Part shown: one piece after another, positions 30,378-60,532 of the stretch | Layout: each line of letters opens with the position of its first letter | Position numbering within the stretch: position 1 is the first letter of the stretch | Assembly (NCBI RefSeq): GCF_023055435.1 | Contig: NW_025964223.1 | Span: 58,466,001-58,530,000 of the forward strand | Reading direction: 5' to 3' | DNA: 64,000 nucleotides | Source: Haliotis rufescens | Lineage: Eukaryota | Program-made: the position numbers and the translations under genes | The notes under the pieces: model-generated | Told to the model about the DNA's origin: nothing | Seen by the model: the letters and a program-made list of their open reading frames with translations, nothing else | Database searches by the model: none

Positions 30378-30496
30378 GTGTGCAGTGTGCAGTGTGCACC
30401 TTGATTTGCTGCAATAATTGGTTGACGTCATCAACTTGTCACCATGTGACTGGGGAACATCACGTGACCATAGATAGCTCCACGAGCCGTATATAA
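30378..30496 (+). promoter_or_regulatory. Ferritin A proximal promoter: 3x MRE core, CRE, E-box, TATA
   Basis: GTGTGCA x3 (TGCACAC on minus strand) 30378-30398; TGACGTCA 30423-30430; CACGTG 30461-30466; TATATAA 30490-30496. Confidence 0.65.
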
Positions 30497-30530
30497 GCTG
30501 CAGGTGACAAGAGTGGCCCCAGTCTACTCT

Positions 30531-30562
30531 TTGCTTAGCTGCGTCAGTGTGCGTACGGGCAA
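30531..30562 (+). promoter_or_regulatory. Iron-responsive element (IRE) in ferritin A 5' UTR
   Basis: ttgctt-AGC-tgcgt-CAGTGT-gcgta-C-gggcaa: CAGUGN loop, 5-bp upper stem, bulged C, lower stem; about 40 nt after the TATA box. Confidence 0.85.
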
Positions 30563-30626
30563 GAAGACAGGAGCGTCAAACTTTCATCTACAATTCCACA
30601 TTCCATACGAGAACTTATCTGCCACC

Positions 30627-30731
30627 ATGCCAGAAAGTCAAGCACGTCAGAACTACCACGTCAACAGCGAGGCGGGCGTCAACAAACAGATTAACGTCCT
30701 GCTGAACTGTAGCTATGTCTACCATTCCATG
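30627..30731 (+). CDS. Ferritin A (atypical, ferroxidase-centre-degenerate) exon 1, aa 1-35
   Basis: GCCACC-ATG Kozak at 30621-30629; translates MPESQARQNYHVNSEAGVNKQINVLLNCSYVYHSM (ferritin helix A); phase-0 donor GTGAGT at 30732. Confidence 0.96.
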
Positions 30732-31312
30732 GTGAGTGTCACACTTAGATCTCTATCTACCAATCCATGTTGAGTGTCACATCTATATTTCTATGTACCA
30801 ATCCGTGGCGAGTGTCACACCTATATCTCTATCTACTGTCCCATGTTGAGTGTTACATCTATATCTCTATCTACTGTCCCATTGTGAGTGTCACATCTAT
30901 ATCTCTATCTACCAATCCATGGTGAGTGTCACATCTATATCTCTATCTACTGTCCCATTGTGAGTGTCACATCTATATCTCTATCTACCAATCTATGGTG
31001 AGTGTCACATCTATATCTCTATCTACTGTCCCATTGTGAGTGTCACATCTATATCTCTATCTACCAATCCATGGCGAGTGTCACATCTATATCTCTATCT
31101 ACCAATCCATTGTGAGTGTCACATCTATATCTATATCTACCAATCCATTGTGAGTGTCACATCTATATCTCTATCTACCAATCCATGTTGAGTGTCACAT
31201 CTATATCTCTATCTACCAATCCATGTTGAGTGTCACATCTATATCTCTATCTACCAATCCATGGCGAGTGTCACCCTTAGATCTCTATCTCTTAATCCAT
31301 AGCGAGTGTCAC
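30720..31312. repeat. 38-bp minisatellite (16 units) spanning the ferritin A exon 1 donor
   Basis: ccatggtgagtgtcacatctatatctctatctaccaat; units start at 30727, 30765 ... 31297. Confidence 0.95.
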
Positions 31313-31922
31313 AGCTTTACAATTCTCCCACTTCCACATTTTCCACACACAATCTCCCTCACCACCTCCATTACCCCCACCACCACACACACACAACGAA
31401 CACACACAAACACACTCAACCACCCCACCCCACCCCACCCCACCCCACTCAACCACGCTCCCCCCAGCCATAGTGCACTTGTCCTGGTCTGGTGCGCGCT
31501 GACCCACAATACGTCCTTGACATTTTGTTGAGATAAAATCTTGTGTAACCCGATAGCCAATGTAGCGTTGCTATTATTCAGACAGACAACCTCTCTCACG
31601 GAGTAATAGTATATGCGTGACAATATTGGTTTATTGTTACGCTGATTGGACGTTACGTAACCCTAGAACCACCAGCTTCAGATGTAGTGTCTGCACATGA
31701 ACAGCTGTCTACATATTGCACGTGGCGCGTGATCATAATACACTATGCAGATGAAGACGATGAATTGAGAAAATAAGGACTGTTATGTTCACAATATCTT
31801 GTAGAGTTGTCTGATGAGTCTATAAAAGCAAAGAATAACTTGATAGAATATTTTATTTATTTATTTTTCTAATAATTGTGTGCTTCCTCTGCTCCGACTC
31901 AGCTGATTCTCTTGTTGTTTCC

Positions 31923-32073
31923 GGGACGGTCGAGTGGTTAAAGCGTTCGCTCGTCACGCTGAAGACCAAGGTTCTATTCCCGACATGGCTACAATATGTG
32001 AAGTCAATTTCTCGCGTCCCCCGCCGTGATATTGTTGGAATATTGCGCGGCATAAAACAATAATCACTCACTC
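31923..32073 (+). mobile_element. SINE family A inserted at the ferritin A intron 1 acceptor
   Basis: Consensus match; 14-bp TSD ctcttgttgtttcc at 31909-31922 and 32071-32084. Confidence 0.9.
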
Positions 32074-32086
32074 TTGTTGTTTCCAG

Positions 32087-32233
32087 GCCTGGTATTTTGA
32101 CCGGGATGACGTGGCCCTGAAAGGATTCTTTGAGTTTCTCAAGGATGCCTCTTGCAAGAAGCGCGAGTTCGCCGAGAAAATGATGAAGTACCAGAACCAG
32201 AGAGGTGGGCGCATCGTGCTGCAGGACATCAAG
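32087..32233 (+). CDS. Ferritin A exon 2, aa 36-84
   Basis: Acceptor ttgtttccAG; [49 protein letters not shown]; donor GTAATC at 32234. Confidence 0.97.
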
Positions 32234-32248
32234 GTAATCACTGAGATG

Positions 32249-32620
32249 TGGCTACAGAACGTCACATTTAACATGGGGTGGGTCCCCATATATCGTCCAG
32301 AGGCAGGGCTGCAGAACGTCACGTTTAACATGGGGTGGGTCTCCATATATGGTCCAGAGGCGGGACTGCAGAACGTCACGTTTAACATGGGGTGGGTCTC
32401 CATATATGGTCCAGAGGCGGGACTGCAGAACGTCACGTTTAACATGGGGTGGGTCTCCATATATGGTCCAGAGGCAGGGCTGCAGAACTTCAAAGTTAGC
32501 TTAGGGACGGGGCTGCAGAAAGTCAGCAGTAACTTAGGGACGGGGTTGCAGAAAGTCAGCAGTAAGTTTTTGACGGGGCTGCAGAACTTCGCAGTTAACA
32601 TGAAGACGGGGCTACAGATT
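32249..32620. repeat. 57-bp (x4) plus 30-bp degenerate repeats in ferritin A intron 2
   Basis: ggctgcagaacgtcacgtttaacatggggtgggtctccatatatggtccagaggc. Confidence 0.9.
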
Positions 32621-32993
32621 ATCCAGTATACATAAAGGCGAGGCTACAAAATTTTACATTTGATAAGGGGCGGGGCTATACTACATCACATTTAAGGGCG
32701 GGGCTACAGGTCACCCAGATAACAATGGATTGCCATAGAGCTGCAGAAAAAACATGAAATCACTGAAACCTGACGCTGTCGCCGCGACGGATGCAGTGAA
32801 TGATGACTTGTGTCCTAGATTTACAGACAAGAGCAACAGAGCGACGCAGGTCATCAAAACATACGATAGCGTACATGTCGCACTCCCACCATTCTCTTAC
32901 AATGTCGTTACTGTCGGAGCAGGGTCAACATTATTAAGAAAGTGGTCACATTTGTTTGTTTGTTTGCTTGCTTCTTAGCTGCACAGATGTGTA

Positions 32994-33231
32994 TTTGTTT
33001 GTTGCTTAACGCCGCACATAGCAATATTCCAGCTATGTGACGGTGGTCTGTAAATAATCGTGTCTGGACCAGACAATACAGTGATTGATATCATGAGCAT
33101 CGATCTACGCAACTAGGATACGATGATATGCATCAATCAAGTCAGCGAGCCTGACCACACGATCCCGTTAGTCACCTATTACGGCAAGCATGGGTTGCTG
33201 AAGACCAATGCTAACCCGGATCTTCACGGGT
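32994..33231 (-). mobile_element. SINE-like family B in ferritin A intron 2
   Basis: Consensus match ending ggatcttcacgggt. Confidence 0.85.
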
Positions 33232-33461
33232 TGGACGCATTTACTCATTTTAGAGAACCTAGTAAACATCAGAAGAACAATATCATAACACATCTAGTGA
33301 TGTAGGTTTAGGGAATCTCCATCTGATTATTACAGATGTTACAGATTATTAAAACTATCATCGCTGTATTAACAGACTTGGCATAAATCCAATCAGATTG
33401 AGTCGTTTTGCTGTGTGTGTAATGTTGATGTAGTCGGGTACATGTAAACGTGTTGTTGCAG

Positions 33462-33587
33462 AAGCCGCCCCAGGACGAATGGGGGACAGGCCTGGACGTG
33501 ATGCAGTCTGCCCTGGCCCTGGAGAAGAGCGTCAACCAGGAGTTCCTGGACCTGCACAAGGTGGCGGACTGCAACACTGACCCACAG
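33462..33587 (+). CDS. Ferritin A exon 3, aa 85-126
   Basis: Acceptor tgttgcAG; KPPQDEWGTGLDVMQSALALEKSVNQEFLDLHKVADCNTDPQ; donor GTGCGT at 33588. Confidence 0.97.
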
Positions 33588-33649
33588 GTGCGTCAGGTCA
33601 CACACTGCTGGGGGTGGGGAGGGTCATGGTATCAATGGTAGTGGGGAAG

Positions 33650-34058
33650 TCGGTGAAGGGTCAGGTCAAATACCGTGAGGGTAGAGGGTGAGGCGGTGAA
33701 GAGTCAGGTCAAATACCGTGAGGGTAGAGAGGAAGGCGGTGAAGGGTCATGTCAAATACCGTAAGGGTAGAGGGGGAGGCGGTGAAGAGTCAGGTCAAAT
33801 ACCGTGAGGGTAGAGAGGAAGGCGATGAAGAGTCAGGTCAAATACCGTAAGGGTAGAGGGGAAGGCGGTGAAGGGTCAGGTCAAATACCGTGAGGGTAGA
33901 GAGGAAGGCGATGAAGAGTCAGGTCAAATACCGTAAGGGTAGAGTGGAAGGCGGTGAAGGGTCAGGTCAAATACCGTAAGGGTAGAGTGGAAGGCGGTGA
34001 AGGGTCAGGTCAAATACCGTAAGGGTAGAGGGGAAGGCGGGGAAGGGTCAGGTCAAAT
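33650..34058. repeat. 43-bp G-rich minisatellite in ferritin A intron 3
   Basis: ggcggtgaagggtcaggtcaaataccgtaagggtagaggggaa, about 9 copies. Confidence 0.93.
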
Positions 34059-34139
34059 AGGCATGTATGTAGTGGTCGCTGTACTGCATATCTTCCCATG
34101 TCACACATCAACTGAGTCTCTGCTGTCTTGCTACTGCAG

Positions 34140-34277
34140 ATGATGGACTTCCTGGAGGATGAGTTCCTGGAAGAGGAGGTCGAGATGATCAAGAAGCTCT
34201 CCGACCACGTGACCAACCTGAAGCGCGTTGGACCAGGTCTCGGAGAGTACCAGTTCGACCACGAGACTCTCAGTTAA
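34140..34277 (+). CDS. Ferritin A exon 4, aa 127-171 plus stop
   Basis: Acceptor ctactgcAG; [48 protein letters not shown]; spliced CDS is 516 nt (171 aa), with three phase-0 introns as in typical animal cytosolic ferritin genes. Confidence 0.97.
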
Positions 34278-60183: not shown

Positions 60184-60285
60184 CACGTGACATTGAGTTA
60201 ACGCCACCTCCTCAACAGGGCCTCAAGTAACCCGGATGCTCTATGACGTCACCGTATTGTTGTGACCCAGCGCTCTGCTATAAAA
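60184..60285 (+). promoter_or_regulatory. Ferritin B proximal promoter: E-box, CRE, ARE-like, TATA
   Basis: CACGTGAC 60184-60191; TGACGTCA 60244-60251; GTGACCCAGC (RTGACnnnGC) 60262-60271; TATAAAA 60279-60285. Confidence 0.65.
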
Positions 60286-60314: not shown

Positions 60315-60348
60315 TTTGTCTTGCTGCGTCAGTGAACGTACGGGCAAA
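60315..60348 (+). promoter_or_regulatory. Canonical ferritin IRE in ferritin B 5' UTR
   Basis: tttgtct-TGC-tgcgt-CAGTGA-acgta-C-gggcaaa: CAGUGN loop and UGC/C internal loop typical of ferritin IREs. Confidence 0.93.
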
Positions 60349-60427: not shown

Positions 60428-60532
60428 ATGGCCCAAACTCAACCCCGCCAGAACTTCCACTGCGAGAGCGAAGCCGGCATCAACCGCCAGATCAATATGG
60501 AGCTGTACGCCAGCTATACCTACCAGTCAATT
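60428..60532 (+). CDS. Ferritin B (canonical soma/H-type) exon 1; gene continues beyond window
   Basis: [35 protein letters not shown] with ferroxidase ligands E25 and Y32 intact; donor GTAAGT at 60533; no ferritin exon 2 seen before 64000. Confidence 0.95.

Follow-up and report, generated by a model that had tools for sequence, protein, structure and literature searches.

Can an invertebrate ferritin lose its ferroxidase site, in the manner of the vertebrate L chain, and still be kept as a subunit of the ferritin shell? This question is raised by a ferritin gene located in the middle of the window analysed here, a 64,000-nt stretch of genome from red abalone, Haliotis rufescens (assembly GCF_023055435.1, contig NW_025964223.1, forward-strand positions 58,466,001 to 58,530,000). 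Mollusc subunits are generally regarded as H- or M-like and H/L heteropolymers as a feature of higher eukaryotes, a view restated in recent work on molluscs (PMC13026281). Based on the analyses presented below, we favour, with confidence somewhat better than even, the reading that this gene encodes a non-catalytic, L-like partner subunit that derives from an old duplication and would co-assemble with catalytic subunits into 24-mers.

An intact ferritin gene without a ferroxidase site

Scripted splicing of the window gene gave four exons of 105, 147, 126 and 138 nt on the plus strand, separated by three GT-AG introns, all of phase 0; translation begins in the context gccaccATGc and yields a product of 171 residues followed by TAA. 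The spliced product is identical to the RefSeq protein XP_046363769.1 ("soma ferritin isoform X1" of H. rufescens; database protein P0124), and the database searches were made either with single exons or with this full-length protein. At full length, it matched solved ferritins with E values of 1e-60 to 1e-87, while exon 2 was 100% identical to P0012 and 98% identical to P0013. In the Pfam Ferritin family (PF00210), exons 2 and 3 scored above the cut-off of 24.5 bits and exon 4 below it; exon 1, searched alone against Pfam, gave no PF00210 match. The initial annotation, made from the letters of the sequence, had described a clean 171-residue ferritin coding sequence with canonical splice sites, Kozak context and polyadenylation signal, and this description was borne out by the identical RefSeq protein, the GT-AG introns and the AATAAA signal (Table 1). 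Judged from its sequence, the product is a cytosolic-type ferritin, having no signal peptide and an N-terminus collinear with those of soma ferritins.

To score the ferroxidase site, we aligned 306 fetched ferritins and read seven columns in the mollusc numbering of PMC13026281, in which the residues are E25, Y32, E59, E60, H63, E105 and Q139. The window protein carries L25, Y32, K59, K60, F63, E105 and E139 at these columns; five of the seven residues are replaced, and Y32 and E105 are kept, every residue being as initially listed. With two of seven residues, the protein lacks the set that characterises catalytic (H/M-type) subunits. Aligning the protein with canonical ferritins from molluscs, with turtle H-like ones and with L-type ones from mammals upheld this position mapping. 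The combination EYEEHEQ was present in 210 of the 306 ferritins, and LYKKFEE was found in seven Haliotis sequences only. Through E25L, E60K and H63F, every ligand of site A is gone, and E59K and Q139E are second-shell changes.

The window protein also carries C28, C58, H116, C121, M128, D129, E132, F135 and M142. Several of these bear on further features that had been noted at first sight. H116, D129 and E132 of the three-fold channel were read in the spliced product and are indeed kept, and helix D is as acidic as described, with eight acidic residues between positions 129 and 141 (D129, E132, D133, E134, E137, E138, E139 and E141). The helix-B nucleation glutamates are partly lost, as proposed: at the mollusc nucleation positions, numbered 58, 59 and 62 (PMC13026281), the window protein has Cys, Lys and Glu, in comparison with Asp/Glu, Glu and Glu in canonical mollusc ferritins, so that E62 is the only acidic residue of the three. 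The proposed cysteine pattern, with Cys at 28, 58 and 121 and the usual C128 missing, held in part. The residues are present, but position 121 is Ser in four of the seven orthologue sequences, and C121 is thus not conserved; C128 itself occurs in only some canonical mollusc ferritins.

The acidic helix D and the retained three-fold channel might be taken to indicate that iron is still oxidised at a non-classical site, either in the helix-D cluster or between subunits. We consider this improbable, given that all site-A ligands are lost and that two lysines and a phenylalanine occupy the site; moreover, we know of no animal ferritin in which iron is oxidised at H-chain rates at a non-classical site.

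Conservation of the derived residues within Haliotis

The 90% cluster of XP_046363769.1 comprises RefSeq models from H. cracherodii, H. rubra and H. asinina, together with three GenBank records: ADK60915 ("ferritin", H. discus hannai), AXU24205 ("ferritin 1", H. rufescens) and AMA34095 ("ferritin", H. diversicolor). These three accessions lie outside RefSeq and are taken to be derived from complementary DNA (cDNA). The RefSeq records of the same gene, named "soma ferritin" or "soma ferritin-like", are XP_046363769, XP_071115219, XP_046584390 and XP_067676777; in all, RefSeq models were present for five genomes. The seven Haliotis sequences, from six species, are 170-171 residues long and 89-100% identical to the window product, and all of them have the LYKKFEE combination. 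The initial annotation had named substitutions not shared by orthologues as a sign against its own reading; the same site replacements were found in all seven sequences.

The conservation extends beyond the site. Twenty positions are fixed in all seven Haliotis sequences with a residue that is present in less than 5% of canonical ferritins (N13, V24, L25, N27, C28, F50, E51, L53, C58, K59, K60, F63, V97, S100, E111, F112, T123, E139, M142 and H167), and variation inside the Haliotis clade is confined to 24 of the 171 positions. The intact frame and the presence of the same replacements in six Haliotis species indicate that the gene is not a pseudogene, in line with the initial view that it does not decay.

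As an object, the gene is already known: it has been cloned, databases hold annotated records of it, and the PDB contains the structure of a relative. Of the papers to which the GenBank records go back, one (PMID 20647051) is said, by its title, to describe "a novel ferritin homolog", and another (PMID 30125708) reportedly deals with "two ferritins from red abalone".

Predicted fold and a solved relative

The AlphaFold2 model of the window protein, built from a 45-row alignment, has a mean predicted local distance difference test (pLDDT) score of 89.8, with helices at residues 12-38, 47-73, 94-121, 125-156 and 160-170. The predicted model thus has the four-helix bundle and the short fifth helix of ferritins. 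Solved ferritins of molluscs, annelids and sipunculans were among the top Foldseek matches, with TM-scores of 0.93-0.96, in a structure library that runs to 2026-04-08 and does not include entry 9x0l.

That entry, "TsFerB", is the best sequence match in the PDB (292.7 bits; 24 chains), with about 128 identities in 168 positions, or approximately 76% by hand count. TsFerB shares ten of the twenty rare abalone states (L25, N27, E51, K59, K60, V97, E111, F112, E139 and H167) and has similar residues at positions 24, 50, 63 and 142, with Trp replacing Phe at 63 and Leu replacing Met at 142. It differs in lacking the abalone cysteines, positions 28, 58 and 121 being Ala, Asn and Ser. Like the window gene, which has a canonical neighbour, FerB, described below, TsFerB is paired with a canonical ferritin, TsFerA (9x0k), which was also among the PDB matches. 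TsFerA is not especially close to FerB or to the third cytosolic-type gene of H. rufescens, FerC, and the TsFerB host is therefore probably no near relative of Haliotis. These comparisons of sequences suggest that the non-catalytic type may predate the genus. No relatives more than 71% identical to the window protein, beyond the Haliotis clade and TsFerB, were found among 5.8 billion proteins, and our literature search found no publication on TsFerA or TsFerB.

Convergent likeness to the vertebrate L chain

In the mammalian L chain, K62 forms a salt bridge with E107. The window protein has the corresponding L-type trio (Lys at H-chain position 62, Glu at 107 and Glu at 141) in K60, E105 and E139; as in the vertebrate L chain, Lys stands for the bridging Glu, Glu107 is kept and Gln141 has become Glu. 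Both proteins also have a bulky residue for Ala144 (position 142 here), have lost Tyr29 (27 here) and are encoded in four exons. The set of residues that the initial annotation regarded as shared with the L chain can be retained for K60, E105, E139 and M142; F135 is the ordinary mollusc state and so falls outside the specialisation. Other replacements differ between the two: E27 has become Leu in abalone and Tyr in the L chain, E61 is Lys in abalone and Glu in the L chain, and His65 is replaced by Phe in abalone and by Gly in the L chain. In the fetched set, a primate L-type ferritin reads YYEKGEE at the seven columns and seal "ferritin light chain-like" proteins read YYKKGEE. The abalone subunit further differs in keeping the three-fold residues H116, D129 and E132 and in having fewer helix-B nucleation acids; the enrichment in nucleation glutamates that is typical of L chains is not seen at C58, K59 and E62.

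To place the Haliotis proteins, 40 proteins were analysed with IQ-TREE, TsFerB being left out of the tree. The representative library clustered at 50% identity was too coarse for close kin and supplied the L-chain and other site-less ferritins. The Haliotis clade was recovered with support of 100/99, on a stem of 0.41 changes per site and with crown branches of at most 0.044, and it was nested within invertebrate ferritins (96/94), while vertebrate H-like and L-type proteins formed a separate group. In the approximately unbiased (AU) test, forcing the clade together with vertebrate L chains cost 14.8 log-likelihood units and was marginally rejected (p=0.037); the convergent columns had been kept in this alignment, a choice that favours the vertebrate-L grouping. 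Forcing the clade together with FerB cost 12.3 units and was not rejected (p=0.22). Because the Haliotis clade falls among invertebrate ferritins, apart from the vertebrate L group, its likeness to the L chain is convergent, as the initial annotation had supposed before any phylogeny was built; common descent with vertebrate L chains is not what the sequences indicate.

A catalytic tandem neighbour and a shared 5′-UTR hairpin

The H. rufescens genome has a single copy of the LYKKFEE-type gene and five ferritin genes altogether: the window gene, its neighbour FerB, FerC (contig C556) and two divergent genes, probably of the secreted type (contig C24). FerB, a canonical catalytic-type gene located 30 kb downstream in the same orientation, keeps all seven site residues. 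The exon sizes of the window gene and FerB are the same, and the window gene shares with its paralogues the four-exon structure and the codons at which its phase-0 introns lie; in FerC, the exons measure 99, 147 and 126 nt, with a slightly longer last exon. The third-position GC content is 0.78 and 0.81 in the tandem pair and 0.50 in FerC. At the protein level, FerB and a Mytilus ferritin share 86% identity, and the identity of the window protein to canonical ferritins does not exceed 71%. Between the window gene and FerB, the nonsynonymous (dN) and synonymous (dS) divergences are 0.29 and 0.94, with a dN/dS ratio (omega) of 0.30, compared with an omega of about 0.10 between FerB and FerC.

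A dN to FerB above that between FerB and FerC, together with the long stem branch of the Haliotis clade, is what a decaying or non-functional duplicate could leave behind. We give this explanation almost no credence. The open reading frame is intact at 170-171 residues in six species, with all twenty rare residues fixed; proteins from three species are present in GenBank outside RefSeq; splice sites, start context, hairpin and polyadenylation signal are intact; and TsFerB, which has been solved as a cage, still has half of the rare states at approximately 76% identity. The pseudogene reading was rejected on the intact frame, the fixed derived residues, the GenBank records and the intact signals.

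In the 5′ untranslated region (UTR) of the window gene, we found a hairpin resembling an iron-responsive element (IRE). It consists of a lower stem, an AGC/C internal loop with a bulged C at 30539, an upper stem of 5 bp with two G·U pairs and a CAGUGU loop at 30545-30550. The core, CTGCGTCAGTG, lies 88 nt 5′ of the ATG of the window gene and recurs at 60324, 104 nt 5′ of the ATG of FerB. The upstream regions of the two genes align across the TATA box and the entire hairpin, and both fold alike with a CAGUGN loop. The folding energy of the window hairpin is no better than that of shuffled sequence, and the argument for an IRE-like element therefore rests on conservation, not on stability. The IRE that had been proposed initially is thus supported as a hairpin that folds and recurs in FerB, and not as a member of a known family: the Rfam IRE families were not matched in the window gene and its 5′ UTR, even when E values of up to 10 were admitted on 151 nt, and an Rfam scan of both canonical paralogue loci (FerB and FerC) gave no IRE family match.

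Further upstream, a TGACGTCA / CACGTGAC-type element and the TATA box align 5′ of both tandem genes (30419-30475 and 60240-60265). From these aligned promoter elements, the duplication appears to have taken in the promoter. The protein tree does not single out a parent gene for the Haliotis non-catalytic ferritin; a tandem origin would be the most economical one.

Proposed role of the non-catalytic subunit

The history and function that we propose would run as follows. A catalytic soma ferritin gene would have been duplicated long ago, most economically in tandem, the dS to FerB being 0.94; the stem branch would then have gone through a burst of change, with purifying selection thereafter. Synthesis of the subunit may be regulated by iron, through binding of the iron regulatory protein (IRP) to the hairpin near the cap. 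The classical site of the product would not oxidise Fe(II); there, K60 probably fills the empty space by pairing with E105 and E139, by analogy with K62 and E107 of the mammalian L chain. Co-assembly with FerB and FerC into 24-mers would tune how stable the shell is and how fast iron is turned over, and the additional helix-D acids D133, E139 and E141, instead of helix B, may provide metal sites on the cavity side.

Several observations limit or weigh against this proposal. The support for expression comes from database records, namely the three GenBank proteins taken as cDNA-derived and the RefSeq isoforms X2 and X3. The AU rejection of the vertebrate-L grouping is only marginal, the 40-protein tree puts the Haliotis clade apart from FerB, and the hairpin went unmatched in Rfam. 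Additionally, with only E62 acidic among positions 58, 59 and 62, the subunit fits the nucleation role of the L chain more poorly than canonical mollusc subunits do. The description of a non-catalytic, L-like cytosolic subunit given in the initial annotation thus stands with respect to its intact cytosolic type, the loss of the site and its separate descent, while the richer nucleation of the L chain is not reproduced, the helix-B acids being fewer. Finally, entry 9x0l contains 24 chains of one TsFerB sequence, which suggests that homopolymers may form as well.

The last observation leads to a different reading, in which the protein would work mainly as a homopolymer with a function outside H/L-type iron storage. 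Such a shell might bind or detoxify another metal, withhold iron in immunity or stress while mineralising slowly without catalysis, or take part in shell or radula formation. Besides the one-sequence cage, the reduced helix-B nucleation acids, the new cysteines 28 and 58, fixed in all Haliotis sequences, and papers that treat the ferritins of abalone as genes of immunity or stress are consistent with this role. However, the cage may reflect expression of a single subunit and would then be uninformative on native composition, TsFerB has Ala28 and Asn58, so that the cysteines are not general to the type, and the tandem linkage and IRE-like hairpin shared with a catalytic gene fit co-regulated partners. 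We therefore regard a mainly homopolymeric role as rather unlikely, though it is the alternative to which we give most weight, and keep the co-assembling partner subunit as the preferred explanation.

A broader proposal is held more tentatively, at somewhat less than even confidence: some molluscs may have an independent two-gene ferritin system, in which a catalytic and a non-catalytic gene stand in tandem, are both controlled by an IRE and contribute products that mix in one shell. Since TsFerB has the same rare residues in another organism, such a system would be older than Haliotis. No account of a two-gene mollusc ferritin system was found in the literature searched.

A conserved invertebrate subunit with the same solution to an empty site would be, in effect, a natural repeat of the way in which the L chain arose. 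The abalone subunit displays the substitutions needed to retire a catalytic site while the fold stays, and the abalone system could be used to ask whether iron storage is generally tuned by combining catalytic with non-catalytic subunits. From a practical standpoint the value is limited, since databases already contain the gene and the PDB a related structure.

Gene features, repeats and isoforms

The coordinates of the features are collected in Table 1.

Table 1. Location of the ferritin genes of H. rufescens and of their associated elements (window coordinates unless a locus or contig is named).
Feature	Position	Strand	Basis or remark
Window gene, exon 1 coding part, 35 aa, helix A (L25, N27, C28, Y32)	30627-30731	+	spliced model; donor gtgagt
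Window gene, exon 2, 49 aa, helix B (C58, K59, K60, F63)	32087-32233	+	PF00210, 32.4 bits
Window gene, exon 3, 42 aa, loop and helix C (E105, E111, F112, H116)	33462-33587	+	PF00210, 25 bits
Window gene, exon 4, 45 aa and TAA, helices D and E (D129, E132, E139, E141, M142)	34140-34277	+	16.3 bits, below cut-off
AATAAA polyadenylation signal, 258 nt 3′ of stop codon	34535-34540	+	direct reading
TATA box TATATAA, ~30 nt 5′ of presumed transcription start	30491-30497	+	direct reading; aligns with FerB TATAAAA
IRE-like hairpin of window gene, 5′ UTR	30530-30563	+	folding; conserved in FerB
IRE-like hairpin of FerB, CAGUGA loop	60315-60348	+	folding; UTR alignment
FerB exon 1 (E25, Y32 kept)	60428-60532	+	tblastn, splice check, translation
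FerB exons 2-4, past window end	L010 4698-4844, 5109-5234, 5861-5998		splice check, translation
FerC, third cytosolic-type fully catalytic gene, L011	C556:37318873-37324204	-	GC3 (third-position GC content) 0.50
Probable secreted-type ferritin gene, L012	C24:9072603-9075317	-	exon search
Probable secreted-type ferritin gene, L014	C24:9082236-9086388	-	exon search

All three introns of the window gene contain minisatellites. Tandem Repeats Finder detected a 38-bp repeat of 15.7 copies with 87% matches at 30718-31313 (plus strand), which starts in the last codons of exon 1. This repeat carries copies of the donor site of exon 1 (CCATG|GTGAGT) into intron 1, and GTGAGT is intact in several of the copies; because the unit is not a multiple of three, splicing at a downstream copy of the donor would shift the frame. 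Intron 2 contains repeats with 57-bp and 33-bp units (32250-32618), and intron 3 a repeat with a 43-bp unit in 9.8 copies (33637-34059). The RefSeq isoforms X2 and X3 (P0012 and P0121; 160 residues) run from exon 2 into intron 2, and they carry fewer 57-bp units than the genome, which suggests splicing within the repeat. No tRNA genes were found by ARAGORN in the introns of the window gene.

Other ferritins lacking site residues

The two secreted-type genes on contig C24 are approximately 11 kb apart. At the ferroxidase stretch, one of them retains "...EEKEH..." and the other reads "...SSHKARTEAE...". By its sequence, the latter is a second, independent site-less ferritin of the H. rufescens genome; it differs from the window gene in belonging to the divergent secreted-type branch, with 43-49% identity in exon 2. 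Some ferritins of cnidarians and nematodes have also lost site residues, each independently, namely those of the jellyfish Sanderia (EYKKNEQ, P0264), the hydrozoan Clytia (EYKKAEV, P0291) and the nematode Panagrolaimus (LYCQQEQ, P0228). The Sanderia and Clytia proteins share with the abalone subunit the Lys-Lys pair at positions 59 and 60; the lineages and sets of replacements of all three differ from those of abalone.

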